From Magallana gigas (Eukaryota): a DNA stretch of 64,000 bases. Every line of letters begins with the position of its first letter. The first letter of the stretch is position 1. This document shows, piece by piece, positions 7,516-64,000 of this stretch. Location: the NCBI RefSeq assembly GCF_963853765.1, contig NC_088857.1, positions 56,730,001 through 56,794,000 on the forward strand. The letters are read 5' to 3'. Under the pieces are notes generated by a model. It was given only the letters and a program-made list of their open reading frames with translations. It was not told the DNA's origin and did no database searches. Position numbers and translations under genes: made by a program.

Positions 7516-7522
7516 TCTGTAC

Positions 7523-15293: not shown

Positions 15294-16250
15294 CTACGCT
15301 TCAGACCCAAAGTCTTCCTGTAAAAGAAAATAAAACCCAGCTAATAAAGTACCAGTACCGATATTGCATAATTATACCAAAATTTATTTATTAACACATT
15401 GATTACAAGACTAAATAAACTGAAAACCTAAAATACAAGACTTAATCAAACGATCTTAAAATAGACGCAAAACACTCTTAAAGTAGACAATAATAGAATA
15501 AACCGAATATTACCATATAAGGAGCTGTGGGCGTTTGTTCAAAACTAGGTCTATCTATGCGAAACTGTAACAGAAGAAATATATAAATTCATCTAAAAAA
15601 CCTATTAAATAATACTCACAGAATGTAAAGACAACAGTATAATACAAAGAAGCATCTAACTTAATTTTAGAACACATACTTTTTCTTTGGCAAAATGTTT
15701 CCTAAAACCAGGTGTTATATTATGTAAAATCAAAACATGTACCGGTATATATATTTTCACATGAAATAAGAGAAATTTAAGCCTGCTTTGCTGGGTGTTA
15801 TGTGTTTGATATACTCCAGAATTATGACAAGTTTATTTGAAGCTTAGTTTACCTCCTCCTTGGGATCCAGTGTATTGAACAGAAAGTCCCAGGAAAAGTT
15901 GGAGGAGGGAGGGAGGTCTTCTCTACGAGATTCTGAAAAACAGGAATCGAAAAAATCCAGAAATCTTGTCAAACCAAAATCACTCATTTTTAACGAGTAA
16001 AAAGATACACACTACAGAGGTTAATATTACTATGAGGTGAAATCACTCACCGAAATAGGAGCTTTCATTGAAGGTGTCTCCTTCAGGTCTATAAAACCTG
16101 TTCCCGTAGCTGAAGGGCAGCTCAGGGAATTCCTGCTGTTGTCTCTGGGAGTCAATGATGTCCCTGGGCTGCTGACCAAAGGGGGATGCTCCAAACATTC
16201 CCACCCCCAGTCCCCCAAACTCCTGGGGTTTGTGTCCTGAAATCTTGGAG
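15294..16250 (-). CDS. Mucin cytoplasmic tail exons (16051-16250, 15853-15932, 15514-15564, 15294-15317)
   Basis: ...FNESSYF|[27 protein letters not shown]|[17 protein letters not shown]|EDFGSEA*; phases are continuous. Confidence 0.82.
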
Positions 16251-19200
16251 CTGACAGAGCCAAATGCTGCCCGGATATGGTAGCTATAGTAAAAATCATG
16301 TCAAAAAATGAATTCTTTTCATTCAAATCCATGGTTTAAATAATCAAGAAAGAATACAGAAAACAGGTTATATAAATACACAAGAGCACCTTTTCATAAG
16401 ACCACGAAACTATCAAATACTCAACTATATATAATATTTTCCAAATAAAGTTCACAGTATCAACTATCTTATAAATAATATAAACTCCAACGGTTCAGAT
16501 AAGAAATTAATAGTGTTTGAATAGGCTGAAAAAGAAAAAAAATCAATCAAGTTGCCTAAAAGCATCAATTAATACTCACGGATCTACGGACGAGAACTCT
16601 GAGTCTGTGCTGGACCGTCGGGCCCGCCTACGTCGACGACAGAGGAGACACATCAGTAGTAGAACCAGGAGGGAGAGGATCAGCCCCAGGGGTAGACCCA
16701 GACCCAGGCCAAGAATCAGGTCAATGTTAGAGGGTACTGTAAACACAAGTTATCTCCCTTATTAATCACTCCGTATTCTAATATTAGAGAATGCTAATGA
16801 TGATGATGACACTGATAAACAATTCTTTATAAGTCTACCAATATAAGTATATTCAAGTAAAACACAAATATTGAATGAGCCTGACCTTCTGTTTGTGCGG
16901 GGGTGGTAACAGTTGTGGCTGGGGCTGCCCTGTAAATGAGAAAAAGGCTTCTAATCATGACATTTAATTACCAATTGGTTTGACACAAAGAGGTTTATTT
17001 ACACAATTGCAAATCCAGAAAAAGAGGTTTACTATATTATTACCGACATCAAGGAGACATAAAAAGATGTGAAATCCGAGGACAAGCACTTACACACACT
17101 GGTATTCATTTGTTGCCTTTACACAGATTTGTTGTGGAGAGCATGTGTAGCATATCACTGCGACTGTAAAATAATGGATCATTGTAAGATAATGGATCAT
17201 TGTAAAATAATGGATCATTGTAAAATAATGGATTATTGATGGAGCTTCAATGCATAGAAGATGGTGGATCACTGATGGAGGTTTAATGCATAGAAGATGA
17301 TGGATCACTGATGGAGGTTTAATGCATAGTAGATGATGGCCCATCCCTGATAGAGATTTAATGCATAGAAGATGATGGCCCATCCCTGATAGAGGTTTAA
17401 TGCATGGAAGATGATGGCCCATCCCTGATAGAGGTTTAATGTATAGAAGATGATGGCCAATCCCTGATAGATGTTTAATGCATGGAAGATGATGGCCCAT
17501 CCCTGATAGAGGTTTAATGCATAGAAGATGATGGCCCATCCCTGATAGAGTTTTAATGCATGGAAGATGATGGCCCATCCCTGATAGAGATTAAATGCAT
17601 GGAAAATGATGGCCCATCCCTGATAGAGGTTTAATGCATGGAAGATGATTGCCCACCCCTGATAGAGGTTTTATGAATGGAAGATGATGGCCCATCCCTG
17701 ATAGAGATTTAATGTATAGAAGATGATGGCCAATCCCTGATAGAGGTTTAATGCAAGGAAAATGATGGCCCATCCCTGATAGAGGTTTAATGCATAGAAG
17801 ATGATGGCCCATCCCTGATAGAGTTTTAATGCATGGAAGATGATGGCCCATCCCTGATAGAGATTAAATGCATGGAAAATGATGGCCCATCCCTGATAGA
17901 GGTTTAATGCATGGAAGATGATTGCCCACCCCTGATAGAGGTTTTATGAATGGAAGATGATGGCCCATCCCTGATAGAGATTTAATGTATAGAAGATGAT
18001 GGCCAATCCCTGATAGAGGTTTAATGCAAGGAAAATGATGGCCCATCCCTGATAGAGATTTAATGCATGGAAGATGATGGCCCATCCCTGATAGAGGTTT
18101 AATGCATAGAAGATGATGGCCAATCCCTGATAGAGGTTTAATGCATGGAAGATGATGGCCCATCCCTGATAGAGGTTTAATGCATGGAAGATGATGGCCC
18201 ATCCCTGATAGAGATTTAATGCATGGAAGATGATGGCCCATCCCTGATAGAGGTTTAATGCATAGAAGATGATGGCCGATCACTGATAGAGGTTTAATGC
18301 ATAGAAGATGATGGCCCATCCTTGATAGAGGTGTAATGTATAGAAGATGATGGCCTATTACTGATAGAGATTTAATGCATAGAAGATGATGGCCTATCAC
18401 TGATAGAGATTTAATGCATAGAAGATGATGGCCCATCCCTTATAGAGATTTAATGCATAGAAGATGGATCACTGATAGAGGTGAAGACCTCGTAAGTTGT
18501 TAGAACTTGTGTCCTAACCATTTGCATACATATGTTATATATGTTCAAATCAAATCAGAGGTTTAATGCATAGAAGATAAGATAGAATAATCAAATACAT
18601 GATGTATATATAATAGCAAAGCGAATTTATAGTAATCCATGTCAGAATTCATAGTCCAAAAAACATCTAGTACACATAAATAGTCAATTAAAACATATAT
18701 TGCACACAATAATAACAATCGTGCATGTACATCTGATAGGGGTTATTCTATCTTTGTTCATGCACTAGCTTTTTTTAAAGGAAACCAAAAAGGTGTAAAA
18801 TATTGAAAGCATAATAATCTAAATTTAATTAGAACACATGTATTCATGCAGTCCCTGTTGACTGAGGGTGAGCATGTCTCTGATTCTTATTTAAACACAT
18901 TTTATTGAGAAATCAAATGGATTGTGTAACAGACAAAGCCTATATAAACTCTCTCAAGAAATGGATTCTCCTTCAGTACATGGGTCTCCGTGTGTTTGTC
19001 TGGAGACTTACTGAGGCTGGTGGAATTTCCTATGTAAGTCTGGTTGTTGAGGGCCACACAGCTGGGGTCTAGGTTCAGGCACTTCTTGCTGTCCACCGTC
19101 TGATATAGCATCTGCCCGACCGTCCGTCTGACCCCCTCCGTCACACTGGTGTTCAGTGATACGTGGGCAACAATCTGGGTTTTCGAGTTTGATATCTCCC

Positions 19201-22200
19201 TAGTAGGAATATAGATATTATGTAGTTAATTAACATGTGTACTTTCACATCAAGTGATCGAGTTATATGTGTAAACTCCTCATTTCAAAGAAAAAAATTA
19301 AAATTTTATCTCTCACCTAAACTCGCTGACATAGATCTCTTCAATGTTTGTCAGGTTCAGTATTGTACCAAGCTGCAAGAAATCAAATCATTAATTTTAC
19401 ATTTATAACAAGAACCTACAGGAATAAAAGTTATTTGTTTTTTTAAAATAATCAAAGATCAGTTCTTGTGTAACTAAGTTTTGTTTTTTTGTCATTGACA
19501 GAATGACCTAAAAAGGAGCCAAAAATAATACTCTTAACATTTTATGAAATATCTATGTCATAACAAAACATCCTCAACCTTTGACCTTGAACTGTATTCT
19601 ATGCATTCACCAAGGTCACTTTTCCAGATAACAAAAATAAAGTGACCACACTTGAGTATATCTCTAATTTGTTTTCCAAGCTTACATAACTTTTCAGAAG
19701 AAGGATTTATAAACCAAGATGGAAGTAGAGATGTCTTACAGAGGATGCGATCTTGTCCGAGTACTCTTTGAATCCGGGGCTACGGGAGTCATTGAGAGCG
19801 GGATCAAAGTCCCTCTCCAAGGACAGCTGTACCATCAAAGTCTTGTCCTCATCTACAATCACAATTAAACATTATAAGGAAGAGATACACATTACAATAT
19901 ATAGGTAAAGATTAACAGAAAGCTACAAAATATGTTATTATTCCAAGGGCAAACTGCTTTGATGGCTGGTTTTGATGCCAATTCTTTTTATTATTGATAG
20001 TTTTGTACTCACCAAGGGAAGATCTATAAAAACAAGAAAATAAAATATAACAGAGATATAATGGTGCTGCAATGATACAGATTTTAAAATTTACTACCCA
20101 TATGTAGCAATATAACATTACATTAAATCCTATGGAAATAGTCAGTGGCATTGTGATTATAATAAGTAGATTTCTCTGCATTTTTACAGACTTAAGTGAT
20201 GAGATGTGACTGTGTGTACATGTACTAACCTGCAGAGGTACTCAGAAGCAGTGTGGAAGTAACAAGATTGTGGACACAGCACACACTGGGCAGGCTCTAC
20301 ACAAAGACATCACAATCAAATGTATGAACAGCATATGAAACAATGTAATACAAATGCTGTATCATGAATGAACTACCAGCATAGGAAAACAATCTAATAT
20401 AATTATTGGTATCAGGTGCATTAACTTTTTATTTGTAAATGTACGTCGTTCGTCTTTCCCGATCATTCTTTGTGGTTGACTGGTACTCACCTTGACTGGT
20501 TCCTACAGTAGGTTCACGCAGGATATTGTACTTGGAAAGTCTGACACTGATTTTGGAGCGTCGGAGGTTTACCAGAGCAGAGCTCACATTGGCTATGTCC
20601 TCGGGGGTAACATCTCTGTCCATCACCAGGTAGAACTCCACAGTCGTATTGCCAGACCTAATCACAATGAATGGCATAAAGAATGAATTATCTTTATAAT
20701 AAAGCAGTGCAGAGGAATTGAGATTCATTAGCTACTTAATTGAGAGCACTCGAAATCTGTCAGATTGTGAACTTACTGTGCAGCATCTTTCCTGAAATAA
20801 AAAGAAAACATCATATTAAGTCTCCTCATTGTTATATCTATTAAACATAAAGACAAATTCTCTCAATCATTTAGTAACAATGTTTCACTTAGTTCACATG
20901 ATGCAGCCAGCTGGAAGAATTTCTCACCTGAATTTTGTAACTACAGGTACAACATTTTCGAAACCAGGTATCTCTCTGAAGGATTTTCTCAACTGTGAAA
21001 CATAAAGTATAATGATGTAAAATGTAATTATTATAATTTTTAAACAGGCCAGTGCATGTATAAATAAAATCACAAGGAAATTATAAATTGATTATTATGA
21101 TAGTATAAAATTATGATTAGCAATAAAAAAAAAAGCCCAATACAGTTTCAAAGTCAAATAAAATTTATATTTTGGGGTAGTTAGAGTATCTGATCAGACA
21201 GGAATGTTTCATTGCTGGTACACTAACAATTAAGACTGGTACACTAACAAGACTGGTACACTAACAAGACTGGTACACTAACAAGACTGGTACACTAACA
21301 AGTCTTTGTGTCTGACACTGAGTTTACTTACAGTCAGGTACACTAACAAGACTGGTACACTAACAAGACTGGTAAACTAACAAGACTGGTACACTAACAA
21401 GACTGGTACACTAACAAGACTGGTACACTAACAAGACTGGTACACTAACAAGTCTTTGTGTCTGACACTGAGCTTACTTACAGTCAGGTACACTAACAAG
21501 ACTGGTACACTAACAAGACTGGTAAACTAACAAGACTGGTACACTAACAAGACTGGTACACTAACAAGACTGGTACACTAACAAGACTGGTACACTTACA
21601 AGACTGGTACACTAACAAGACTGGTACACTAACAAGACTGGTACACTAACAAAACTTGTACACTAACAAGACTGGTACACTAACAAGACTTGTACACTAA
21701 CAAGACTGGTACACTTACAAGACTTGTACACTAACAAGACTGGTACACTAACAAGACTTTGTGTCTGACACTGAGTTTACTTACAGTCAGGTACACTAAC
21801 AAGACTGGTACACTAACAAGACTGGAACACTAACAAGACTGGTACACTAACAAGACTGGTACACTAACAAGACTGGTACACTAACAAGACTGGTACACTA
21901 ACAAGACTGGTACACTAACAAGACTGGTACACTTACAAGACTTGTACACTAACAAGACTGGTACACTAACAAGACTGGTACACTAACAAGACTGGTACAC
22001 TAACAAGACTTGTACACTAACAAGACTGGTACACTAACAAGACTGGTACACTAACAAGACTGGTACACTAACAAGACTGGTACACTAACAAGACTGGTAC
22101 ACTTACAAGACTTGTACACTAACAAGACTGGTACACTAACAAGACTTTGTGTCTGACACTGAGTTTACTTACAGTCAGGTACACTAACAAGACTGGTACA

Positions 22201-25200
22201 CTAACAAGACTGGTACACTAACAAGACTGGTACACTTACAAGACTGGTACACTAACAAGACTGGTACACTAACAAGACTTTGTGTCTGACACTGAGTTTA
22301 CTTACAGTCAGGTACACTAACAAGACTGGTACACTAACAAGACTGGTAAACTAACAAGACTGGTACACTAACAAGACTGGTACACTAACAAGACTGGTAC
22401 ACTAACAAGACTGGTACACTAACAAGACTGGTACACTAACAAGTCTTTGTGTCTGACACTGAGTTTACTTACAGAGTCCTCAAAGTCTTTCTTGGTGTTC
22501 TTGTAGATGGCAGTTGGGGGGTGGAAAAGGTCCTCCAGGAAGGGGTAATCGGTGGTCATGTTGACAGGGATCTTGTTGTCTATGGCTACAAACATCAAAC
22601 AAGATGTGTAATAGCTTGTGTAATGACCAGGGTATCAGTCATAATATATAATTAAGTAATAGATGGGGAGGCGTGAACAGACCAATACGAGAAGTCAGGT
22701 AACCTACCAACACAAGTTTCGTTGTCTTGTGGGTTTAAGCGAGAGTTCGAGCTGCAGTAACATTCAGGGTTTCCATCCTTGATTCTACAGGCATAAGAAC
22801 AGTTCTTTGCAGCATTACAGGGATCCAAATCTGAAAAAATGTACAAGTCTAATATTTAAACAAATCTATCAAATGATAAGTATTCAAAATCAGTACTGTA
22901 TTATCATAACATGGAATGCTTTGCTGCTGCATTACAGCAAACAATTTAATTCAGTCATTACTTCTATTACGTCAAGTATATAATTGTTTCTATGAAATTC
23001 TGTCATGATCCGATTTATCTTTGCAAGCAGAATGCTATTAGTGGTTATATGACACCTGTGCTTACCTTGGACACAGGTGCGCTGGTCATCGGCCAGGTGG
23101 AAGCCCGTGTGACACTGACAGAAGAAGCTGCCCAGGGTGTCCACACAGATCTGTTGGCAGTCGTCACTCTTCAGAGTACACTCGTCCAGATCTGAAGTGG
23201 TATTCATGATCGTTAAAATATTTAAAACACAAGTGGAATTCATTGTTAGAATATTTAAAACACAGTAAAAATAACTAATTTAATCTTAATTAAGCCACCT
23301 GAAAACTGAAACATGACCACTATCTTTTAAATTAATTTAACAAAACAGCAAAGTTGAATATTTCTAATGCCATCATGGTAATAATAAGCATTGGTCATTA
23401 TTTTCCACACTATCATCTGATACAAAGCTGGACATAGGGCTCACTATGGCATGTCTTGTTGTCAGCGTCCAGTATGAATCCATCGCTACAGGAGCAGAGG
23501 AATCCACCGTCCATGTTGTAACAGCGCTGGGAACAGTCATGCTGGTTTGTCTCACACTCATTGATGTCTACAATTTAATCAAGGACGGTTAATGAAATTT
23601 CACAAATCCAGTAAACAAATTTCATCAAATTCAATAAACATGCTCACAAGAAAAGTCTTGGCTGCGATATTTATTGTTATTTTTGCATACAGAGATTCTG
23701 TATCCTTTCATTTTATAACTGGGTTTAATGCAAAACATGACAGATGGGAAAAAGATACCGCATCTCAATAGAATGTCCTTATATGTCCAAGTTCTTTTTA
23801 CACAATTTTGACTGTAATGTTTTGGTATATTACATGCAACATAAAGCATGTATCACATTTTCTTTTCACATACAATACCAGATGAGAGATGGTCATAAAT
23901 CTAGAGACTACAGCTAACAAAATGAAGTTGTATTAGCCTGTTGTTGTTAATCATGTTAATGCTAAGACCACTGTTTGACAGTAATAAGGTACCTGTGCAC
24001 TGTGTACTCTGACTGTTGGAGAGTTTGGTATATCCCGGATCACACTGACAGATGTAGGATGGCTCACGGTTCACGCAGTGAGAGTTCTCTCCGCACTTAT
24101 TGGTGGAGCTGTTGTGACATTCGTCTATGTCTGTCGAGCACTGGGCGCCGGTCCAGCCGGCCTCGCACACACACCCTCCCAGAGAGTCACAGTAAAGTGC
24201 CCCCACTCCACAGCCACACTGGTTCTCACAGCCAATGCCCCAACTGTCTGTCTTGTTACAACCTTAAATGAAGTTTTTAGTACTATGCTAAGGTTGCTCA
24301 ATAAAATTGATCAAAGAGGGTCATGATCGTGTGTCATAAATTCATTGGTCTCTGCTACATTAATACTATAATTATAAATTCTTGCAATATATCATCAAAA
24401 ACCTACTGAGCTCAACACAATACAATAAATTATATAGCATCTCAAATACCGATATTTCATGGATGTCAACATTCAGGTCACGGGGACCTAGAGAAATACC
24501 GGTACTCTGCTTACCTTGACACGTTTTCTTATCTGCCAGCAGAGCGGTTCCTGGGGGACAGGAGCAGTGGAATCCCCCCGCCGTGTTGTTACAGAGGTCA
24601 GAACAGCCATGTGCAATGTCAGCACACTCATCTATGTCTGTAAAAATTGTCATAAAAGAAATAAAATTTATGAATTTATTTACCAGTACTCATATAAACC
24701 TTACACTTTTATCATATTTATATTCATATACCTTATACACAAGTTTATTGTATACAAATTTTGGACCCTTTATGTTACATTTTCAATTAATTGCAAAAAA
24801 TCCTAACTTTTGATACATGCTCATGGTCTGGATATGTCTGCTACATATGTTGGAATGTTTGCTTGGGAAACTTTTAGTAAGTTTTTCAATATGTCAAATG
24901 TTTTGTCAAATTTATCAAAATGTAAACAATCTTAAAGGCAAACTCAGAAATATACTGTTAATTATACATTTTATTCCTCTTTTTCCACAATGTAATATCC
25001 ACTCAAATGCTTTGTTCGTATACACAGAAACCATTAATTTAACATAGTAAAAATATCTATTTTAACAGTAAATAGTTGATGCCAATAATCACAGATATTA
25101 AGTGTACCTGTGCACTGGTTGGAGGTCTGATTGAGCCGATATCCCTGGAGACAGAAGCAGAAGGGGGAGCCTGAGCTGTTGGTTGTACATCCTCCCAGCT

Positions 25201-28200
25201 GGGCTTCATCACAGGACAGGCTTGATCCCTCACAGGGGTTGGAGGCTAATCAAGAACAAACAATGGAACAGATTAAACACTGGAGTGACATATTAGTTTA
25301 GTAGAAATTACGCTGGATCCCTCACAGGGGTTGGAGGCTAATCAAGTACAAACAATGGAACAAATTAAACACTAGACAAACAATGGAACAAATTAAAAGC
25401 TAGACAAACAATGGAACAAATAAAAAGCTAGACAAACAATGGAACAGGTTAAACACTAAACAAACAATGGAACAGGTTAAACACTAAACAAACAATGGAA
25501 CAGATTAAACACTAGACAAACAATGGAACAGATTAAATACTAGAGTGAGCTATAAGTTAAGTAGAAATTGAGAATTAACAAAATATGTTTGTTGAAGATT
25601 AATTACTGTAAGAGGTGGTTGGATGCAGATAATGCAGAGATTCCAAAATATCTGATTCTGAATAAGAGTTAAGAGCTATTGTAAAGGGCTGGTGTGCAGA
25701 ACCTTACATTTGACACAGGTCCTCCTGTTATCCTGCAGTAAGTAGCCTATGTTACATTTACAGTTGTAGCTACCCTCGGTGTTGACACAGTGATGATTAC
25801 AATCATCTGTCTGAAGCTCGCACTCATTCACATCTGATGAAAAAAAAATAGACTGGACTGTTAAAAAAATACAACTATTAAGAAAACCCAATATCATACA
25901 CCATGACTGATGTAAACAGAGCTTATGGCTTGTTGAAACATATATAAATATAACCACAGTTGACTGTAAATAAACATCCTAACAAATTGGACGTTTTCAT
26001 TCAGCTAAAAATAAAAATATCTAGTTTAACCTCTCACTTACCAGTATGTACATGTAACTACCATGTATTAAATATCCTGTTATACCTCTCACTGATGTAC
26101 ATGTAACTACCATGTAATAAAAATCTTGTTATATCTCTTACTTATGTACACGTAACTACCATGTAATAAAATCTTGTTATACCTCTCACTGATGTTCAGG
26201 TAACTACCATGTAATAAAAATCTTGTTATACCTCTCACTGATGTTCAGGTAACTACCATGTAATAAAAATCTTGTTATACCTCTCACTGATGTTCAGGTA
26301 ACTACCATGTAATAAAAATCTTGTTATACCTCTCACTGATGTTCAGGTAACTTCCATATGTGATAAAATATCCTGTTATACCTTTCACAGATGTTAAGGT
26401 AACTACCATGTAATAAAAATCTTGTTATACCTCTCACTAATGTTCAGGTAACTACCATGTATTAAATATCCTGTTATACCTTTCACAGATGTACAGGTAA
26501 CTACCATGTACTAATCATCCTGTTATACCTCTTACTTATGTACAGGTAACTACCAAGTAATAAAAATCCTGTTATACCTCTCACTGATGTACACGTAACT
26601 ACCATGTAATAAAAATCCTGTTATACCTCTCACTGATGTACCGGTAACTACCATGTAATAAAAATCTTGTTATACCTCTCACTGATGTTCAGGTAACTAC
26701 CAATGTGATAAATATCCTGTTATACCTTTCACAGATGTACACGTAACTACCATGTAATAAAAATCTTGTTATTCCTCTCACTTATGTACACGTAACTAGC
26801 ATGTATCAAAAAACTTGTTATACCTCTCAATGATGTACAGGTAACTACCATGTATTAAAAAACTTGTTATACCTCTCACTGATGTACAGGTAACTACCAT
26901 GTAATAAATATCCTGTTATACCTCTCACTGATGTACAGGTAACTACCATGTAATAAAAATCTTGTTATACCTCTCAATGATGTTCAGGTAACTTCCAATG
27001 TGATAAATATCCTGTTATGCCTTTCTCAGATGTACACGTAACTACCATGTAATAAAAATCTTGTTATATCTCTTACTTATGTACACGTAACTACCATGTA
27101 TTAAAAATCTTGTTATACCTCTCACTGATGTTCAGGTTACTACCATGTAGTAAATATCCTGTTATACCTCTCACAGATGTACAAATAACTACCATGTAAT
27201 AAAAATCTTGCTATACCTCTACATTGTCCAGACGCCTCCCTTTGATACCCAGGCAGGCAGTCACATCGATAACTTCCCAGGGTATCGGCACAAACCTCCA
27301 GCACTGTACAGTTGTAGAGAGATTCCTTGCACTCGTTAATATCTGAACAAACAGACAAATGTCATCCACTGGGTAAATATGATGTTAAAATTCAAGTGTT
27401 GGTCCTATGAACTTTCGTCTTAACACTCTGTTATAACTTTGATTTATATCTGTGGTCTATCACTTTGTTCAAACTAAACTTTACGTAATTGAAAAGAAGA
27501 GATAAAAAGGGTTACATTCTATATTACTGAAAACATACTGACATTTACTTCTGAAGGAAGAAATTGTATGACCTACTTTCACAGTTTCCAGTGGTCTGAT
27601 TCCTCAGGTAGCCCGCCTTACACTGACACACATAGGACCCGGGGGTGTCCACACAGTTCTCCAGACCCCCGCACGGTCCCCCACCCACACACTCGTTAAT
27701 GTTGACCTCACAGTGGGTCCCTGACCAACCGTCCTTACACTGGCAGCCAAACTTAGAATCACAGGAGATGGAATTCTGGGTACAGTCACATGACTGGTTA
27801 CAGTTCACGCCCCAATGAACAGTGTCACATTCTGCAAGATCAGAGGATAAAGATAATCATCTTCTTAAATTATTGAAAGATAAAGGCGCATGATTCACAA
27901 TAAGTACACAATAAAATCTTCTGATGATAATTAAACTCCAAACTATAGTAGGTCTTTTTACAGAAATTAAGTTGTAGAATGATCAAAAAACAAATTCTTT
28001 GACAAAAAGTAAAGTTAATCCATAAAATCCCTATGATCAATTTCCATTACCTGTGCAAGATTTCTGGTCATCCATCAGTTGGAAGCCTGTCACACAGCTA
28101 CATGTATATCCGCCTTCAGTGTTTGTACACAACTGAGGACATTTCTTGCCAGTCACCTCCAGACATTCATCAATATCTGCAGTGAATTGCAATCAGACAA

Positions 28201-46200: not shown

Positions 46201-49200
46201 CAGCTGTTGGGCTTGTGGCCTCAGTAGTGTTCGTGGTACTTGCTTCAGTTGCAGTACTGCTTTGTTCAGCAGTTGTTGTCTTGCCAGTAATGGTAATCTC
46301 GCTAGTGGGCGACTCCGTGGCACCCTTTGTGGTGGTGGATGCGTCTGGCACATTAGTTGAAGTAAGTCCAGAGACGGATGTGCTAGCCTCAGTTATTGTA
46401 GTTTCAGCGGTGGTTGTTGTGGCTTCTGTAGCTGTTGTATTTGTGGTTTCACTAGCGGTCGTAATACTTGCTTCAATCGTAGTACTGCTTTGTGCACTGG
46501 TAGTGTTCACGCCAGCAGTGGTAGTCTTACCAGTGAACGACTCTGTGCTGCCTGCTGTGTTGGTGGTTGCACCTGGCACAGAAGTTGAAGAAGTAAGTCC
46601 AGTGGTGAATGTGCTAGCCTCACTTGTAGCAATTTCAGCTGTTGTTGTTGTGGCGACTGCATCTGTTTGGGATGTGGCCTCAGTAGTGTTCGTGATACTT
46701 GCTTCAGTTGCAGTACTGCTTTGTTCAGCAGTTGTTGTCTTGCCAGCAATGGTAGTATTGCTAGTGGACGACTCGTTGCTACCCTCTGTGGTGGTGGTTG
46801 CATCTGGCACATTAGTTGAAGTGAGTCCAGAGGTTGATGTGCTAACCTCTTTTGTAGTAGATTCAGTGGTTATTGTTGTGGCTTCTGTAGCTGTTTTGTT
46901 TGTGGTTTCAGTAGTGCTCGTAATACTTGCTTCAAGCGTAGTACTGCTTTGTGCATCGGTAGTATTCAGGCCAGTAGTGGTAATCTCACCAGTGGACGAC
47001 TCTGTGCTGCCTGCTGTATTGGTGGATGCGTCTGGCACAGAAGTTGAAGAAGTGAGTCCAGTGGTGAATGTGCTAGCCTCACTTGTAGCAATTTCAGCTG
47101 TTGTTGTTTTGGAGACTGTAGGTGTTGGGCTTGTGGCCTCAGTGGCGCTCGTTGTAGTTGCTTCAGTTGCGGTAGTGCTTTGTACATTGGTAGGGTGCAT
47201 GCCAGCAGTAGTAGTCTCGCTGGTAGAGGACTCAGTGTTGCCTATTGTGGTGGTGGTAGCGTTTAGCACAGAAGTTGAAGACGTGAGTCCAGTGGTGAAT
47301 GTGCTAGCCTCACTTGTAGAACTTTTAGCTGTTGTTGTTTTGGAGACTGTAGGTGTTGTGCTTGTGGCCTCAGTAGTGTTCGTGGTACTTGCTTCAGTTG
47401 CAGTACTGCTTTGTTCAGCAGTTGTTGTCTTGCCAGCAATGGTAGTCTCGCTAGTGGGCGACTCCGTGCTACCCTCTGTGGTGGTGGTTGTGACTGGCAC
47501 ATTAGTTGAAGTTAGTACAGAGGTTGATGTGGATATACTAGCCTCACTTGTAGTAGTTTCAGTGGTTGTTGTTGTGGCTTCTGTAGCTGTTGTTTTTGTG
47601 GCCTCAGTAGCGTTCGTAATACTTGCTTCAAGCGTGGTACTGCTTTGTGCACCGGTAGTATTCAGGCCAGCAGTGGTAGTCTCACCAGTGGACGACTTTG
47701 TGCTGCCTGCTGTGTTGGTGGTTGTGTCTGGCACAGAAGTTGAAGAAGTGAGCCCAGAGGTGAATGTGCTAGCCTCACTTGTAGCAATTTCAGCTGTTGT
47801 TGTTGTGGCGACTGCATCTGTTGGGCTTGTGGGCTCAGTAGTGTTCGTGGTACTTGCTTCAGTTGCAGTACTGCTTTGTTCAACAGTTGTTGTCTTGCCA
47901 GCAATGGTAGTCTCGCTAGTGGACGACTCCGTGCTACCCTCTGTGGTGGTGGTTGTGACTGGCACATTAGTTGAAGTTAGTACAGAGGTGGATGTGCTAG
48001 CCTCACTTGTAGTAGTTTCAGCGGTTGTTGTTGTGGTTTCTGTAGCTGTTGTGTTTGTGACTTCAGTAGTACTCGTAATACTTGCTTCAGTTGCGGTACT
48101 GCTTTGTGCATCGGTAGTATTCAGGCCAGTAGTGGTAATCTCACCAGTGGACGACTCTGTGCTGCCTGCTGTATTGGTGGATGCGTCTAGCACAGAAGTT
48201 GAAGAAGTGAGTCCAGTGGTGAATGTGCTAGCCTCACTTGTAGCAATTTCAGCTGTTGTTGTTTTGGAGACTGTAGGTGTTGGGCTTGTGGCCTCAGTAG
48301 CGCTCGTTATAGTTGCTTCAGTTGCGGTAGTGCTTTGTACATTGGTAGGGTGCATGCCAGCAGTAGTAGTCTCGCTGGTAGAGGACTCAGTGTTGCCTAT
48401 TGTGGTGGTGGTAGCGTCTATCAGAGTAGTTGAAGAAGTGAGTGCAGAGGCGGATGTGCTAGTCTCACTTGTATTAGTTTCAGCTGTTGTTGTTGTGGCG
48501 ACTGCAGCTGTTGGGCTTGTGGCCTCAGTAGTGTTCGTGGTACTTGCTTCAGTTGCAGTACTGCTTTGTTCAGCAGTTGTTGTCTTGCCAGTAATGGTAG
48601 TCTCGCTAGTGGACGACTCTGTGGCACCCTTTGTGGTGGTGGATGCGTCTGGCACATTAGTTGAAGTGAGTCCAGAGACGGATGTGCTAGCCTCAGTTCT
48701 TGCAGTTTCAGCGGTGGTTGTTGTGGCTTCTGTAGCTGTTGTATCTGTGGTTTCACTAGCGGTCGTAATACTTGCTTCAATCGTAGTACTGCTTTGTGCA
48801 CTGGTAGTGTTCACGCCAGCAGTGGTAGTCTTACCAGTGAACGACTCTGTGCTGCCTGCTGTGTTGGTGGTTGCACCTGGCACAGAAGTTGAAGAAGTAA
48901 CTCCAGTGGTGAATGTGCTAGCCTCACTTGTAGCAATTTCAGCTGTTGTTGTTGTGGCGACTGCATCTGTTTGGGCTGTGGCCTCAGTAGTGTTCGTGAT
49001 ACTTGCTTCAGTTGCAGTACTGCTGTGTTCAGCAGTTGTTGTCTTGCCATCAATGGTAGTATTGCTAGTGGACGACTCGTTGCTACCCTCTGTGGTGGTG
49101 GTTGCATCTGGCACATTAGTTGAAGTGAGTCCAGAGGTTGATGTGCTAACCTCTTTTGTAGTAGATTCAGTGGTTGTTGTTGTGGCTTCTGTAGCTGTTT

Positions 49201-52200
49201 TGTTTGTGGTTTCAGTAGTGCTCGTAATACTTGCTTCAAGCGTACTACTGCTTTGTGCACCGGTAGTATTCAGGCCAGCAGTGGTAGTCTCACCAGTGGA
49301 CGACTCTGTGCTGCCTGCTGTGTTGGTGGTTGCGTCTGGCACAGAAGTTGAAGACGTGAGTCCAGTGGTGAATGTGCTAGCCTCACTGGTAGCAATTTCA
49401 GCTGTTGTTGTTTTGGAGACTGTAGGTGTTGGGCTTGTGGCCTCAGTAGCGCTCGTAATACTTGCTTCAAGCGTAGTACTGCTTTGTGCACCGGTAGTAT
49501 TCAGGCCAGCAGTGGTAGTCTCGCTGGTAGAGGACTCAGTGTTGCCTATTGTGGTGATGGTAGCGTCTAGCACAGAAGTTGAAGACGTGAGTCCAGTGGT
49601 GAATGTGCTAGCCTCACTTGTAGAACTTTTAGCTGTTGTTGTTTTGGAGACTGTAGGTTTTGTGCTTGTGGCCTCAGTAGTGTTCATGGTACTTGCTTCA
49701 GTTGCAGTACTGCTTTGTTCAGCAGTTGTTGTCTTGCCAGCAATGGTAGTCTCGCTAGTGGGCGACTCCGTGCTACCCTCTGTGGTGGTGGTTGCGACTG
49801 GCACATTAGTTGAAGTTAGTACAGAGGTTGATGTGGATGTACTAGCCTCACTTGTAGTAGTTTCAGTGGTTGTTGTTGTGGCCTCTGTAGCTGTTGTTTT
49901 TGTGGCCTCAGTAGCGTTCGTATTACTTGCTTCAAGCGTAGTACTGCTTTGTGCACCGGTAGTATTCAGGCCAGCAGTGGTAGTCTCACCAGTGGACAAC
50001 TCTGTGCTGCCTGCTGTGTGGGTGGTTGTGTCTGGCCAAGAAGTTGAAGAAGTGAGTCCAGAGGTGAATGTGCTAGCCTCACTTGTAGCAATTTCAGCTG
50101 TTGTTGTTGTGGCAACTGCATCTGTTTGGGCTGTGGCCTCAGTAGTGTTCGTGATACTTGCTTCAGTTGCAGTACTGCTTTGTTCAGCAGTTGTTGTCTT
50201 GCCAGCAATGGTAGTATTGCTAGTGGACGACTCGTTGCTACCCTCTGTGGTGGTGGTTGCATCTGGTACATTAGTTGAAGTGAGTCCAGAGGTTGATGTG
50301 CTAACCTCTTTTGTAGTAGATTCAGTGGTTGTTGTTGTGGCTTCTGTAGCTGTTTTGTTTGTGGTTTCAGTAGTGCTCGTAATACTTGCTTCAAGCGTAG
50401 TACTGCTTTGTGCACCGGTAGTATTCAGGCCAGCAGTGGTAGTCTCACCAGTGGACAACTCTGTGCTGCCTGCTGTGTTGGTGGTTGCGTCTGGCACAGA
50501 AGTTGAAGACGTGAGTCCAGTGGTGAATGTGCTAGCCTCACTGGTAGCAATTTCAGCTGTTGTTGTTTTGGAGACTGTAGGTTTTGTGCTTGTGGCCTCA
50601 GTAGTGTTCATGGTACTTGCTTCAGTTGCAGTACTGCTTTGTTCAGCAGTTGTTGTCTTGCCAGCAATGGTAGTCTCGCTAGTGGGCGACTCCGTGCTAC
50701 CCTCTGTGGTGGTGGTTGCGACTGGCACATTAGTTGAAGTTAGTACAGAGGTTGATGTGGATGTACTAGCCTCACTTGTAGTAGTTTCAGTGGTTGTTGT
50801 TGTGGCCTCTGTAGCTGTTGTTTTTGTGGCCTCAGTAGCGTTCGTATTACTTGCTTCAAGCGTAGTACTGCTTTGTGCACCGGTAGTATTCAGGCCAGCA
50901 GTGGTAGTCTCACCAGTGGACAACTCTGTGCTGCCTGCTGTGTGGGTGGTTGTGTCTGGCCAAGAAGTTGAAGAAGTGAGTCCAGAGGTGAATGTGCTAG
51001 CCTCACTTGTAGCAATTTCAGCTGTTGTTGTTGTGGCAACTGCATCTGTTTGGGCTGTGGCCTCAGTAGTGTTCGTGATACTTGCTTCAGTTGCAGTACT
51101 GCTTTGTTCAGCAGTTGTTGTCTTGCCAGCAATGGTAGTATTGCTAGTGGACGACTCGTTGCTACCCTCTGTGGTGGTGGTTGCATCTGGTACATTAGTT
51201 GAAGTGAGTCCAGAGGTTGATGTGCTAACCTCTTTTGTAGTAGATTCAGTGGTTGTTGTTGTGGCTTCTGTAGCTGTTTTGTTTGTGGTTTCAGTAGTGC
51301 TCGTAATACTTGCTTCAAGCGTAGTACTGCTTTGTGCACCGGTAGTATTCAGGCCAGCAGTGGTAGTCTCACCAGTGGACAACTCTGTGCTGCCTGCTGT
51401 GTTGGTGGTTGCGTCTGGCACAGAAGTTGAAGACGTGAGTCCAGTGGTGAATGTGCTAGCCTCACTGGTAGCAATTTCAGCTGTTGTTGTTTTGGAGACT
51501 GTAGGTGTTGGGCTTGTGGCCTCAGTAGCGCTCGTAATACTTGCTTCAAGCGTAGTACTGCTTTGTGCACCGGTAGTATTCAGGCCAGCAGTGGTAGTCT
51601 CGCTGGTAGAGGACTCAGTGTTGCCTATTGTGGTGATGGTAGCGTCTAGCACAGAAGTTGAAGACGTGAGTCCAGTGGTGAATGTGCTAGCCTCACTTGT
51701 AGAACTTTTAGCTGTTGTTGTTTTGGAGACTGTAGGTTTTGTGCTTGTGGGCTCAGTAGTGTTCGTGGTACTTGCTTCAGTTGCAGTACTGCTTTGTTCA
51801 GCAGTTGTTGTCTTCCCAGCAATGGTAGTCTTGCTAGTGGACGACTCTGTGCTACCCTCTGTGGTGGTGGTTTCGTCTGGCACATTAGTTGAAGTGAGTC
51901 CAGAGGTGGATGTGCTAGCCTCATTTGTAGTAGTTTGAGTGGTTGTTGTTGTGGCTTCTGTAGCTGTTGTGTTTGTGGTTTCAGTACTGCTCGTGGTACT
52001 TGCTTCAGTTGCGGTACTGCTTTGTGCACCAGTAGTATTCAGGCTAGCAGTGGTAATCTCACCAACGGACGACTCTGTGCTGCCTGCTGTGTTGGTGGTT
52101 GCGTCTGGCACAGAAGTTGAAGAAGTGAGTCCAGTGGTGAATGTGCTAGCCTCACTTGTAGCAATTTCAGCTGTTGTTGTTTTGGAGACTGTAGGTGTTG

Positions 52201-55200
52201 GGCTTGTGGCCTCAGTAGCGCTCGTTGTAGTTGCTTCAATTGTAGTAGTGCTTTGTACATTGGTAGGGTGCATGCCAGCAGTAGTAGTCTCACTGGTTGA
52301 GGAATCAGTGTTGCCTATTGTGGTGGTGGTAGCATCTAGCAGAGTAGTTGAAGAAGTGAGTGCAGAGGCGGATGTACTAGCCTCACTTGTATTAGTTTCA
52401 GCTGTTGGTGTTGTGGCGACTGCATCTGTTGGGCTTGTGGCCTCAGTAGTGTTCGTGGTACTTGCTTCAGTTGCAGTACTGCTTTGTTCAGCAGTTGTTG
52501 TCTTGCCAGCAATGGTAGTCTCGCTAGTGGAAGACTCCGTGCTACCCTCTGTGGTGGTGGATGCGACTGGCGGATTAGTTGAAGTGAGTGCAGAGACGGA
52601 TGTGCTAGCCTCAGTTATTGTAGTTTCAGCGGTTGTTGTTGTGGCTTCTGTAGCTGTTGTATTTGTGGTTTCACTAGCGGTCGTAATACTTGCTTCAATC
52701 GTAGTACTGCTTTGTGCACCGATAGTGTTCACGCCAGCAGTGGAAGTCTCACCAGTGGACGACTCTGTGCCGCCTGCTGTGTTGGTGGTTGCGCCTGGCA
52801 CCGAAGTTGAGGAAGTAAGTCCAGTGGTGAATGTGCTAGCCTCACTTGTAACAATTTCAGATGTTGTTGTTGTGGCGACTGCATCTGTTGGGCTTGTGGC
52901 CTCAGTAGTGTTCGTGGTACTTGCTTCAGTTGCAGTACTGCTGTGTTCAGCAGTTGTTGTCTTGCCATCAATGATAGTCTCGCTAGTGGACGACTCTGTG
53001 CTACCCTCTGTGGTGGTGGTTGCGTCTGGCACATTAGTTGAAGTGAGTCCAGAGGTGGATGTGCTAACCTCATTTTTAGAAGTTTCAGCGGTTGTTGTTG
53101 TGGCTTCTGTAGCTGTTGTGTTTGTGGTTTCAGTAGTGCTCGTAATACTTGCTTCAGTTGCGGTACTGCTTTGTGCAGCGGTAGTATTTAGGCCAGCAGT
53201 GATAGTCTCACTAGTGGACGACTCTGTGCTGCCTGCTGTGTTGATGGTTTCGTCTAGCACAGAAGTTGAAGAAGTGAGTCCAGTGGTGAATGTGCTAGCC
53301 TCACTTGTAGAAATTATAGTTGTTATTATTTTGGTGACTGTAGGTGTTGGGCTTGTGGCCTCAGCAGTGTTTGTGGTACTTGCTTCAGTTGCAGTTCTAC
53401 TTTGTTCAGCAGTTGTTGTCTTGCCAGCAATGGTAGTCTCGCTAGTTGGCGACTCCGTTCTACCCTCTGTGGTGGTGGTTGCGACTGGCACATTAGTTGA
53501 AGTGAATACAGAGGTAGATGTGTATGTGCTAGCCTCACTTGTAGTAGTTTCAGTGGTTGTTGTTGTTGCTTCTGTAGCTGTTGTATTTGTGGCCTCAGTA
53601 GCAATCGTAATACTTGCTTCAGTTGCGGTACTGCTTTGTGCACCGGTAGTATTCAGGCCAGTAGTGGTAATCTCACTAGTGGACGACTCTGTGCTGCCTG
53701 CTGTATTGGTGGTTGCGTCTGTCACAGAAGTTGAAGAAGTGAGTCCAGTGGTGAATGTGCTAGCCTCACTTGTAGCAATTTCAGCTGTTGTTGTTTTGGA
53801 GACTGTAGGTGTTAGGCTTGTGACCTCAGTGGTGTTCGTGGTACTTGCTTCAGCTGCAGTACTGCTTTGTTCAGCAGTTGTTGTCTTGCCATCAATGGTA
53901 GTCTCGCTAGTGGACGACTCTGTGCTACCGTCTGTGGTGGTGGATGCGTCTGGCACATTTGTTGAAGTGAGTCCAGATGTGGATGTGCTAAATTCATTTT
54001 TAGAAGTTTCAGTGGTTGTTGTTGTGGCTTCTGTAGCTGTTGTTTTTGTTGTTTCAGTAGTGCTCGTAATACTTGCTTCAGTTGCGGTACTGCTTTGTGC
54101 AGCGGTAGTATTTAGGCCAGCAGTGGTAGTCTCACTAGTGGACGACTCTGTGCTGCCTGCTGTGTTGATGGTTGCGTCTGGCACAGAAGTTGAAGAAATG
54201 AGTCCAGAGGTGAATGTGCTAGCCTCACTTGTAGCAATTTCAGCTGTTGTTGTTGTGGCGACTGCATCTGTTGGGCTTGTGGCCTCAGTAGTGTTTGTGG
54301 TACTTGCTTCAGTTGCAGTACTGCTTTGTTCAGCAGTTGTTGTCTTGCTATCAATGGTAGTCTTGCTAGTGGACAACTCTGTGCTACCCTCTCTGGTGGT
54401 GGTTGCGTCTGGCACATTAGTTGAAGTGGGTGTAGAGGTGGATGTGGTAACCTCATTTGTAGTAGTTTCAGTGGTTGTTGTTATGGCTTCTGTAGCTGTT
54501 GTGTTTGTGGTTTCAGTAGTGCTCGTAATATTTGCTTCAAGCGTAGTACTACTCTGTGCACCGGTAGTATTCAGACCAGCAGTGGTAGTCTCGCTAGTGG
54601 ACGACTCCGTGCTGCCTACTGCGTTGGTGGAGGCGTCTGGCACAGTAGTTGAAGAAGTGAGTCCAGTGGTGGATGTGCTAGCCTCATTTGTTGTACGTTC
54701 AGCTGTTGTTGTTGTGGTATCTGCAGCTGTTGTGCTTGTGGCCTCAGTAGCGCTCGTGGAACTTGCTTCAGTTGTGGTACTGCTTTGTGCACCGGTGGTT
54801 GTCAGGCCAGCAGTGGTAGTCTCGCTAGTGGAAGACTCCGTGCTGCCTACTGTGGTGATGGTTGCGTCTGGCACAGTAGTTGAAGAAGTGATTTCAGAGG
54901 TGGATGCTGTATCGTTTTTTGTTGTTTCGGCTGTTATATGAATGTTTATATAACTTTCTGAATTATCAATATTTAAGGCATGCAAGTAATTGCATTTTTG
55001 CATATACTTGGTTAAAGTTGATAAAAAATATGATAAATTTTGCTTTAAAATAATAATTTGCATGTTTAGTTAATGATTAATATGTTAAAGTTTGATAGCA
55101 ATTGTTGATATCGTTTGTTCAAACCAAATTAAATTTCTATTATATTACTTGGAACGAATTATATTACATTGAATTTATAAGAGATGGCTTGATACTGTGT

Positions 55201-58200
55201 AAGTTTTTTGCACTCGTAAACATTTGATGTTTTCATGTCAATTTGTATATAAATATCAAACATTTTGCCAAATAAATAGTAGATGGCAATGCATTCATGT
55301 CATGAATATTTTAACAAATCAGCAAGCATGTTCACGAAGCTAGCATAGGACTATGGTGTGTCCTAAATACATCTTAGGGTATGTCTTAGTCTTAAGTCTG
55401 TTTCTCGAAGCTCTCCTAAATTTAGGAAACGCCATAACTTTTTCCTAACTTTAAGACATCACTTACCTTGTCCTTGGGGGATATAGTGACTGCTGTGAAG
55501 ATTTTCCTTAAGACCGGTAGAATAAAACAATACTTTCTACAGTTCTAGCATTCCGACAAACCTTAAATTCCTAATCCGGAAAGGGGGGGGGGGGTTCATT
55601 CATTCTATCAAACAAAATTAAGTGGAGAGGGACCTGACAAATTACATATTTTTTCGCAAATATTGTCTTTAGCATATTAAAATTATTTTTGACCTATTTT
55701 GAACATCTTCATTGTATACTGAGTTACATTAATTGTTTTGATTACTTTTAAGTATTCAAATGTCAATGTCAAATGTTATTAGACAAGTAGGTTAAAGGAT
55801 TGACAACTCGATGATTTCTCGAAGTTCACCAGTGTAGGATACACATTTCTACACTATAAATGCATTCAACAAATTTAAGATGACACATAATCAAACATCA
55901 TAGAAGCTTAGAAGTTTAATTGCACATGGAAGATAGGCGTGTACCAACTATTCAACTAATTTCACTTTCTGCTAATAAACTCTGAAATATCAGTGTCTTT
56001 AAAAGAGTTACAAATAAATGCTATGAATTTCTTTAAAACAAAACTTACGTCTGGAGCTTGTAGAGATGTATGCATCCGTCGTTGTCAAAGTATTTGAGAT
56101 TGTAGTTATACTTTCTGTAGAGCTAGCCAAGCTGCGGTCCGTAGAAATAACAGTGGTAAAAACTAAAATCAAAAGACGATAATTCTGTAACGCACGTTGA
56201 TAAGAACATCTTTAAATTAAAGCAGGTTTACATATACAAAATTGAAGTCTATGAATATCTTTTTTTGGATTCACTTTTATATTTACTTCATAGAGAATTT
56301 GCTGTATTGAATTGAACTTTTTTATATTCCGTTATTACAGAAAAAAATATACATGAACTGATTTCAAATTGAATTACATACATGTATATTATGAATAGTT
56401 ATAATAAGTTATCCAAAATCGAACGGCAACTTAATTACCCTAGTATATCTGACCAGTGTCATGCCGATACGTGACTCATTACAATGATATTCCATTCATG
56501 ATTAACATTATTCCCGCATCATGACAAAAATTACAGATAAAATCACGTTTTTTTAGCAAGAAAATAGAAATCAGCAGAAAACGAAGCGATCAAATTTTAA
56601 ACGACCCTTTTTCTATTAAATCAGTTTTGTTCCAAAAAAACAAAAGACCAACGCTAGGGACGTGATAGAGCAGATCTAATATTGAGAGTATCCACGTTAA
56701 CGGATCAATTTTTATTGTTAGGGATGTTTAAGCAAGATAGAATGAAACTTGAAAAATTATTTTTTTTTCCGAATAAAATAGGAATTAATGTGTTCATAAC
56801 ATACATCCAGATAACATGAACGCAATGCAGACCTTTATCAGAAAACCTTGTTATAAATGAGTAACATGGTTTTATGATTGTTCATTTATTTGAAATTGCC
56901 AGACCACTTTTGCATTTCCAGCAGACGTAATTATACATGTGATTTCTACTTAACAGTTTTCGATATGGTTTAATAGTTCTAGATAGATAACAATTATTTT
57001 CTTGTCTTTTAGTGAACGAGATTTTCGCATGAATTTTATATGACAAATAAGCAGAAACTATGTCCAATAACTACCTTTTCTTTGTTTGCAGGAATAATTC
57101 AATAAAACATTAGATTCTTAGACTATTTTTATGTTGGCTAAAGTTTAAACTTGTTTTACACTTCATTTAGCACTCTATGTCGGTAAGAGTAAACTTCAAA
57201 CAAGATTGATTGGAATCTAGGTGATAATTTTTTGGTATATATTAGATCATTCTAAAACGACGTGCTCTTGTGCTGACAAAACCTAGGCAGCATGCCGTCG
57301 CACTACACGACTTCGACAATCCGCCATCACCGTAAAATAACATCGCACAACATGCCATGGTGCTGACACAACTTCGGAAAAGATGCCGTTGCGATAACGA
57401 CACTTCAACAAAAATGTTGGTGCTAAAACAACTTTATATATTGAATTGTCTTGACAACACGTCTTTGCGCTAGCGCGACCTCGATACCATGCCATAGCAG
57501 AAACAAAACTTTACACAACACACCGTCGCTGGGTCAAATTTTTCAAAACAAGCTGTAGCGCAAGCACGACTTCGACATCACGCTATGGTACTGAGACAAC
57601 TTCGCTTAACGCCGTTGAACTAATCCAATTTCAGACTGTCGTCTGTAGACGTTTATGAGTGGTGGGCCTTTGCAGAAATAATTTTAAACACCAAATTTAA
57701 AACGTAAAATTTTTTTAAACATCATAAAAACGGCCTTAAACTTCCCTAATGTTATAAAAGCATCTAAATCAGTTTCCGAGCTTAACCGATACAGCAATCT
57801 ATTATGAATTCATTTCACATATAATTCTATGCAAAAGTATAATATACACATACACTCTGCTGTTGTATTTTTTGCAACTGTTTTACTTGTGGCCTCAGTA
57901 GCGCTTGTGGTACTTGTGTCAGTTAAGGTACTGCTTTGTGCACCGGTGGTTGTCAGGTCAGCAGTGGTAGTCTCGCTAGTGGAAGACTCCGTGCTGCCTA
58001 CTGTGGTGGTGGTTAGGTCTAGCACAGAAGTTGAAGAAGTGAGTCCATAGGTGGATGTGCTAGCCTCACTTGTAGTAGTTTCAGCTGTATTTGTTGTGGT
58101 ATCTGCAGCTGTTGTGCTTGTGGCCTCAGTAGCGCTCGTGGTACTTGCTTCAGTTGTGGTACTGCTTTGTGCACCGGTGGTTGTCAGGCCAGCAGTGGTA

Positions 58201-64000: not shown

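Follow-up and report, generated by a model that had tools for sequence, protein, structure and literature searches.

The 64,000-nt stretch of DNA analyzed here (the window) is the chromosome piece C5:56,730,001-56,794,000 of a 564-Mb assembly of the Pacific oyster, Magallana (Crassostrea) gigas, and its minus strand carries all the domain exons and part of the repeats of what we read as a single giant gene, ~105 kb in length, for a type I membrane mucin. We put the probability of this reading, including the domain chain and the mechanism proposed below, at about 0.8. From the N- to the C-terminus, the deduced protein is made up of Thr/Ser repeats, a NIDO domain, a divergent AMOP domain, a VWD domain with a GDPH motif, a C8-3 domain, an Ig-like module, 17-18 EGF-like modules, a first SEA domain (SEA1), a 4-Cys module, a second SEA domain (SEA2), another 4-Cys module, a transmembrane (TM) helix and a cytoplasmic tail. 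The hybrid of a MUC4-type core with SEA domains that the original prediction had proposed for this DNA was supported by both domain scores and predicted folds. Coordinates above 64000 carry the window numbering on into DNA from the same chromosome. Domain searches of the window were run exon by exon, while whole domains were read on the stored transcript protein P0001 and its relatives, using Pfam cut-offs of 25 bits for NIDO, 25 for AMOP, 23.6 for Big_9 and 26.4 for SEA. The features are summarized in Table 1.

The continuity of the gene is documented by transcripts. Searching with the NIDO exon retrieved P0001, a 1,962-aa protein with 99% identity whose coding sequence is found on two contigs without introns, L017 and L018, assembled from the runs SRR13528979 and SRR13528983. 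Exon by exon, L017 is 90.6-100% identical to the window (at least 94% in all exons but three), and canonical GT-AG sites were resolved at 38 of its 43 junctions. The contig runs from the last 95 nt of a giant repeat exon to a 114-nt exon, on to the exon at 38631-38365 and through 41 more exons; in both contigs a single open frame leads from the Thr/Ser repeats through the NIDO exons, and L017 reaches the stop codon at 15294. Its first 95 nt match the end of giant exon B (57948-57854) with 95.8% identity and the end of giant exon C with 94.7%, and these two sources are indistinguishable. Splicing of the repeats to the NIDO exons, and from there down to 15294, was thus as predicted, but not by the expected route. 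The junction used in the transcript is 56049-to-38631, and exon A is absent from both L017 and L018; the predicted junction 40024-to-38631 is present only in database gene models, namely RefSeq "mucin-4 isoform X1" XP_019918870.1, UniProt A0A8W8NWN4 and C. angulata XP_052694144.1. Exon A is included in RefSeq, Ensembl and UniProt models, and the resulting ...TTVILG/TTESS junction (a slash marks splice junctions and cleavage sites throughout) is found in P0127, P0123 and P0120. The predicted exon set was incomplete, lacking the 114-nt exon at 56162-56049 as well as two micro-exons used by L017, 20791-20777 (15 nt) and 20023-20013 (11 nt), which have perfect splice signals.

Tandem Repeats Finder reported a single array with a 231-bp period running from 40055 to 64000 within the window. 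Its coding unit is 77 aa, with ~37-42% Thr, 17-20% Ser, 12-13% Ala, 8-9% Glu and just 1.3-2.3% Pro, and Thr and Ser together account for 54-63% of the repeat residues. The Asp content is 1.7-2.6% next to the ~8-9% Glu, an acidic and Pro-poor composition that is unusual for a Pro/Thr/Ser-rich (PTS) domain; N-glycosylation sequons number 94 in exon A and 6-10 in exons B and C. The repeats are split over three giant exons, A, B and C, not contained in one. Exon A and the 2,049 codons of exon B that lie within the window together encode about 7,018 aa without a stop, in agreement with the predicted continuous frame of >7,000 aa of Thr/Ser repeats. As an estimate of the whole array this figure falls far short, as the repeats extend about 57 kb past the end of the window and may amount to some 25,000 residues at most. 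The coding frame of exons A, B and C contains 0 stops, compared with 86-984 in the two other frames. Two long open reading frames that a mechanical search found on the opposite strand of the array, 40053-51938 (3,961 aa) and 51939-54941 (1,000 aa), both on the plus strand, represent antisense read-through of the stop-free repeat unit, with no sign of genes.

Exons B and C share one donor (GAGT/gtatgt), exons B and A share one acceptor (acag/CC), and all giant exons as well as the 114-nt exons are symmetric with phase 1-1, so that any repeat exon can be skipped with the frame kept. The repeats of exon A are older and more diverged, with about 86% identity to those of exons B and C; since exon A is open over 4,969 codons despite this divergence, its frame points to selection and not to repeat homogeneity alone. 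Exon B repeats are 98-99% identical to those of exon C. A chimeric origin of exon B, with an A-like 5' part and a C-like 3' part, was considered and rejected, the exon being C-like along its whole length. The C/B intron (79319-82254 in the extended DNA) and the B/A intron (55070-57853 in the window) are 97% identical over 2.75 kb, and each contains one copy of the 114-nt Thr/Ser exon; the array has thus grown by duplication of an exon together with its intron. At the DNA level the 114-nt exon has no significant similarity to the beginning of exon C, and a relation between these two was dropped.

The 5' end of exon C is unlike those of exons A and B. It contains an in-frame ATG followed by the hydrophobic stretch TILFLLLII-RAQ-SSS, with an A/T-rich TATA-like sequence about 45 nt upstream, and exon C is therefore likely to supply the putative start codon and signal peptide. 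By arithmetic, a coding sequence (CDS) with every exon would measure 81,237 nt and specify 27,078 aa, or 22,109 aa if exon A is left out.

The NIDO-AMOP-VWD core of the original prediction was recovered, NIDO and VWD by Pfam and AMOP by profile comparison. Using hhalign, a 17-sequence family alignment of the AMOP region matched bona fide AMOP with a probability of 96.2% and, over 134 columns, an E-value of 2e-9; the conserved Cys were in register, and the partner was the Mercenaria SUSD2-like protein P0155, which scores 79 bits with Pfam AMOP. Pairwise BLASTP of the AMOP region against the bona fide AMOP protein matched the AMOP-VWD linker only. The GDPH motif is found at P0001 residue 389, in the first VWD exon, and is followed by the MUC4-type C8-3 domain, which like NIDO and VWD scored over its Pfam cut-off. 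The Ig-like module, also predicted, gave Big_9 scores just below the cut-off, and a Biomphalaria homologue scored 28.6 bits, over the cut-off. The rod of about 17 EGF modules stands as predicted: P0001 residues 746-1480 contain 106 Cys, corresponding to 17-18 six-Cys modules, ten of which carry the D/N-x-D/N-E-C calcium-binding consensus, and Pfam gave ten EGF_CA matches in P0001, in addition to many EGF and cbEGF matches in single window exons.

Between the EGF rod and the membrane, two SEA-like modules had been predicted in 19012-22585, a span that agrees exactly with exon ends. SEA1 was identified by Pfam at P0001 1490-1574 with 30.1 bits, above the cut-off, and a five-sequence profile of residues 1478-1790 retrieved, among PDB sequences, the murine MUC16 SEA domain 1ivz (E 2e-5) and ADGRF1 (E 3.5e-5). 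Neither Pfam on the SEA region exon by exon nor a six-frame PF01390 scan of the whole genome gave a match in the window, because three or four exons contribute to every SEA domain. In an AlphaFold2 model of residues 1478-1790 (predicted local distance difference test, pLDDT, 83.7), two modules of the order beta-alpha-beta-beta-alpha-beta are seen, and a small Cys-rich hairpin comes after each of them. The SEA1 model matched SEA5 of human MUC16 with a Z-score of 13.7 (2.2 A over 111 residues), next came the SEA domains of 1ivz, TMPRSS6, TMPRSS11D and GPR126, and unrelated folds had Z <=8. When SEA2 was folded alone (pLDDT 83.8) and compared with 48,161 PDB chains, the top five were all SEA domains, the best again being MUC16 SEA5 (Z 13.6, 2.4 A over 111 residues), and Foldseek at E<=1e-3 returned six matches, all SEA domains. 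A Foldseek list obtained with the two domains together was headed by tandem-ferredoxin proteins, which at about 20 A root-mean-square deviation are spurious, and the single-domain matches were preferred. On this evidence, both SEA domains are real. An EGF module precedes SEA1 and a conserved 4-Cys hairpin follows each SEA domain, the 4-Cys modules having no Pfam EGF match of their own.

The autoproteolysis motif G/S(V/I)VV was found in neither SEA1 nor SEA2 when the strand 2-3 turn was located by alignment and by the strand positions in the model. The turns read FRKDAAQSG/NTTVEF in SEA1 and SNSKTQIV in SEA2, neither with a Ser, Thr or Cys after Gly, and both domains are therefore predicted not to self-cleave. 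They would thus probably act as uncleaved structural modules near the membrane rather than as sites of cleavage that come apart under load. The 15-nt micro-exon inserts KDAAQ into the SEA1 turn, where other SEA domains self-cleave. Minus KDAAQ the turn (FRSG/NTTV) has the same length as that of the MUC1 SEA domain, FRPG/SVVV.

The TM helix corresponds to P0001 1788-1814, a hydrophobic stretch of 27 residues followed by RRRRRARR. Both the helix and the tail had been predicted, the tail at ~135 aa; it is a conserved segment of 148 aa. Translation stops with the codon that ends at 15294, and the 3' untranslated region extends to about 14695.

Table 1. Positions of the mucin gene features and the neighboring gene, in window numbering. 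The mucin features are given from the 5' to the 3' end of the gene.
Feature	Positions	Strand	Evidence or remarks
Exon C, Thr/Ser repeats	120757-82255	-	38,503 nt, 12,834 codons, phase 1-1; outside the window, upstream
Twin of the 114-nt exon, in the C/B intron	80560-80447	-	Equally good copy of the 114-nt exon; phase 1-1
Exon B, Thr/Ser repeats	79318-57854	-	21,465 nt, 7,155 codons, phase 1-1; window part 64000-57854, 2,049 codons
114-nt Thr/Ser-rich exon, in the B/A intron	56162-56049	-	ttttag/ and /gtaagt, phase 1-1; L017 96-209, 97.4% identity
Exon A, Thr/Ser repeats	54930-40024	-	14,907 nt, 4,969 codons, phase 1-1
Thr/Ser-rich non-repetitive linker exon, repeats to NIDO	38631-38365	-	267 nt; L017, 99.6% identity
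NIDO, three exons	38214-38081, 36461-36144, 35864-35666	-	Pfam PF06119, 53 and 28.7 bits (single exons), 96.7 (P0001)
Divergent AMOP, two exons, 11 Cys	35471-35212, 35013-34794	-	Pfam 14.4-18.1 bits
VWD, three exons	33841-33593, 33376-33233, 32774-32571	-	Pfam 48 bits on P0001:380-670
MUC4-type C8-3 (PF23263)	32330-32085	-	36.2 bits (exon), 34.2 bits (P0001)
Ig-like (Big_9 / cadherin-like, PF17963)	31628-31433	-	22.5 bits (exon), 20.5 bits (P0001)
EGF rod, 15 exons	31156-22708	-	17-18 EGF-like modules
SEA1	22585-22473, 20992-20927, 20791-20777, 20657-20491	-	Pfam, profile and predicted fold
4-Cys mini-module and 11-nt micro-exon	20296-20230, 20023-20013	-	L017 alignment, splice contexts; Cys conserved
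SEA2, three exons	19852-19740, 19372-19304, 19202-19012	-	Predicted fold
Second 4-Cys mini-module	17163-17094	-	
Thr-rich stalk	16929-16886	-	
TM-helix exon	16736-16580	-	RRRRRARR directly after the helix
Cytoplasmic tail exons	16283-16051, 15938-15853, 15564-15514, 15317-15294	-	L017 alignment
V-ATPase subunit H gene	552-5460, possibly to 7901	-	V-ATPase_H_N and V-ATPase_H_C exon matches

From this domain chain a mode of action can be proposed. The repeats would be densely O-glycosylated and form an extended, negatively charged brush, which would make up the apical glycocalyx or a tethered mucus on the epithelia of the gill, mantle or gut. Autocleavage at GDPH is established for the VWD domains of MUC4, MUC2 and FCGBP, and the oyster precursor may cut itself at the VWD GDPH in the same way as MUC4, leaving a huge mucin alpha-subunit held non-covalently on a membrane beta-subunit and able to be shed. 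The calcium-binding EGF array would be a stiff spacer and would, together with the uncleaved SEA modules, hold the core off the membrane. Cassette exons, and probably repeat-number variation too, may tune the length of the brush, the protein ranging from about 15,000 to 27,078 aa according to the exons kept. Extended mucin domains measure roughly 0.25 nm per residue, and about 25,000 repeat residues would therefore give a brush of several micrometres.

Several observations weigh against this reading or parts of it. The only transcript contig found starts 95 nt inside a repeat exon and skips exon A, and the joint presence of C, B and A in one mRNA is seen in neither transcript nor protein. A database search with the putative N-terminus (L006:6338-6757:-) gave no match, and with repeats that are 98-99% homogeneous, mis-assembly could have altered the lengths of the arrays. 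AMOP in P0001 scored 18.1 bits and SEA2 18.8 bits, both below the Pfam cut-offs, and the SEA folds were built from P0001, the product of a transcript from another individual (95-100% identical), not from the window exons. The most far-reaching version of the large-mucin reading, in which C, B and A are joined in one mRNA with an 81.2-kb CDS for a 27,078-aa mucin whose domain set preserves the ancestral membrane mucin, vertebrate MUC4 having lost SEA, is doubtful; to our knowledge, no known mucin is as long as such a product would be, and it would rank with the longest known polypeptides of animals. The chances are only slightly below even that this same gene uses its giant exons as alternative cassettes, with combinations of them being rare or absent, giving proteins with one or two arrays, roughly 7,000-22,000 aa, and no 27,078-aa product. 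This agrees with the phase 1-1 of all repeat exons and the 114-nt exons, and with the skipping of exon A in L017 and L018 while database models include its 3' end. There is, on the other hand, no sign of exon B or C skipping, the 3' ends of these two exons being indistinguishable in L017, and the only start codon and signal peptide apparently lie in exon C.

We regard it as improbable that part of the array results from faulty assembly or from a polymorphic duplication, in which case exon B and its intron would be falsely duplicated or haplotype-specific. The 97% identity of the C/B and B/A introns is near typical oyster allelic divergence, exon B repeats are nearly those of exon C, and the 114-nt exon has an equally good twin. 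Yet the 224 kb examined contain no gaps (N), exon B has an acceptor context of its own, similar to exon A's, and its frame is kept through all 7,155 codons, and independent assemblies of two other oyster species contain open repeat frames of >3,000 aa at the locus. It is also unlikely that the protein is mainly a secreted or matrix protein, either shed mucus or a shell-matrix "mucin-like protein" resembling the coral skeletal homologue. The family owes its name to a protein of the coral skeletal matrix that has NIDO-AMOP-VWD-EGF (PMC3748352), mollusc and sponge members are annotated as "mucin-like protein", and the GDPH motif would permit release of the mucin subunit; against this stand the clear TM helix, the poly-Arg stop-transfer sequence and the conserved tail, the two SEA domains beside the membrane as in tethered mucins, and the lack of a proteomic match to the gene accessions in the searchable literature. 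The annotation of C. angulata, where the repeat exon is given by NCBI as a distinct 4,609-aa product, implies a repeat gene separate from a NIDO-EGF-SEA gene. This is very hard to credit, being already contradicted by L017 and L018, in which the repeat exon is spliced in frame to the NIDO exons; in addition, several models have exon A spliced to the exon at 38631, and the repeat frames are stop-free up to consensus donors with all phases matching.

Among known systems, the single large membrane mucin gene favored here is close to vertebrate MUC4 (rat sialomucin complex ASGP-1/ASGP-2), with which the oyster protein shares a tandem-repeat domain, O-glycosylated in MUC4 and predicted to be so in the oyster, that is encoded by giant exon sequence N-terminal to the core, NIDO, AMOP, VWD with GDPH, the MUC4-type C8-3 domain, EGFs and a single TM helix, and with which it would also share a two-subunit organization, tethered but sheddable. 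It differs in having two SEA domains, of which MUC4 has none, an Ig-like module, 17-18 EGFs instead of 3, a 77-aa repeat unit that is Pro-poor and acidic compared with the 16-aa unit in MUC4, repeats that fill three giant exons and may reach about 25,000 residues, an AMOP too divergent for Pfam's cut-off, and a 148-aa tail, that of MUC4 being about 22 aa. The deduced oyster protein is therefore MUC4-like in its core but without the architecture of vertebrate MUC4. With MUC16 and MUC3/12/13/17 it has a membrane-proximal SEA in common, both oyster folds matching MUC16 SEA best; the alternation of SEA with small Cys-rich modules, possibly EGF-like, may correspond to the EGF-SEA-EGF cassette of MUC3/12/13/17, and the extreme size resembles MUC16. 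Unlike the oyster protein, these SEA-type mucins are without the NIDO-AMOP-VWD core, and the oyster SEA domains are without the G/SVVV motif.

The combined architecture has been published for cnidarians. Mucin4-like proteins of sea anemones (Actinia tenebrosa and others) combine NIDO-AMOP-VWD with a C-terminal SEA and a TM helix, a combination taken as support for the idea of Zaretsky and Wreschner that MUC4 descends from an SEA-bearing ancestor (PMC9080433, 2022). As in the oyster protein, NIDO, AMOP, VWD, SEA and a TM helix are found in one chain; the cnidarian proteins are transcriptome-derived, with a single SEA and short, variable low-complexity regions, and no long EGF rod or giant repeat exons have been described for them, while the oyster protein has two SEA domains with a 4-Cys module after each. 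The novelty expected in the original prediction is thus reduced by this publication, and by an old RefSeq record already named "mucin-4", but stands for the oyster gene itself, on which literature searches, including searches with the gene accessions, found no paper. A homologous NIDO-AMOP-VWD(-C8-3) core followed by calcium-binding EGF arrays is also present in the mollusc, echinoderm, sponge and coral "mucin-like protein" family (the Acropora skeletal-matrix protein, and members in Haliotis and C. virginica), in SUSD2 and in Drosophila Mesh; members of the "mucin-like protein" family differ in being mostly without Pfam-detectable SEA, in having models without a giant mucin domain and, in some cases, in carrying FN3, CUB or Sushi domains. 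The earliest-branching MUC4-like protein has been placed in Xenopus (Lang et al., PMC4948705). New here is a bilaterian gene with two SEA domains, a rod of 17-18 EGFs and a repeat domain that is encoded by three exons and exceeds every annotated model several-fold in length.

Core homologues of this "mucin-like protein" family were found in molluscs, sea urchins and sponges with E-values of 1e-37 to 1e-206, and among these a Pfam SEA was detected in oyster members only (M. gigas, Saccostrea echinata, a C. virginica paralogue and one Logan transcript). A shorter oyster paralogue lineage of about 1,590 aa (P0014 / P0134, C. virginica LOC111121500 and LOC111121491, and P0140) has NIDO, calcium-binding EGFs and the two-SEA cassette, with only about 23% identity to the M. 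gigas protein across the SEA region; oysters thus have more than one gene of the NIDO-plus-SEA design. As anticipated, automated annotation splits and truncates the gene. Public M. gigas models are of 332, 590, 1,923, 2,097 and 2,532-2,659 aa and are named "uncharacterized", "Fibrillin-1" or "mucin-4"; the protein cluster contains XP_065939866.1 and other M. gigas and C. angulata proteins, and an exact look-up of the current RefSeq fragment P0118 returned no record. The separate 4,609-aa C. angulata model lies directly upstream of the NIDO-containing gene, and in both C. angulata and Saccostrea echinata the NIDO exons are directly preceded, on the same strand, by an open Thr/Ser frame of >3,000 aa. 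Synteny is conserved downstream as well, where the V-ATPase subunit H gene is found in M. gigas, C. angulata and S. echinata; the open segment 7503-7901, to which that gene possibly extends, had no Pfam match. Minisatellites occur in introns of the mucin gene at 17237-18466 (39 bp x32), 21232-22443 (17 bp x72), 26046-27220 (49 bp x24) and 34506-34803 (33 bp x9), and near or within the V-ATPase H gene at 6413-7521 (69 bp x16); several of them give long spurious open frames.

Classical surveys kept NIDO-AMOP-VWD mucins and SEA mucins as separate classes, and the oyster gene provides a transcript-supported bilaterian invertebrate case with both module sets and a true giant mucin domain. Together with its oyster NIDO-plus-SEA relatives it adds to the sea-anemone evidence for an ancestral membrane mucin with SEA, a domain subsequently lost in vertebrate MUC4, and it is a clear example of the growth of a mucin array via duplication of exon plus intron. 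Current gene models cover at most about 10% of the length of the gene product, and RNA-seq quantification, proteomics and orthology tables therefore treat the gene as fragments or as "Fibrillin-1". On oyster epithelia its product probably forms a major part of the glycocalyx or mucus, and would, if so, sit at the surface on which food particles are sorted and at which pathogens such as OsHV-1 and Vibrio make their first contact with the oyster.

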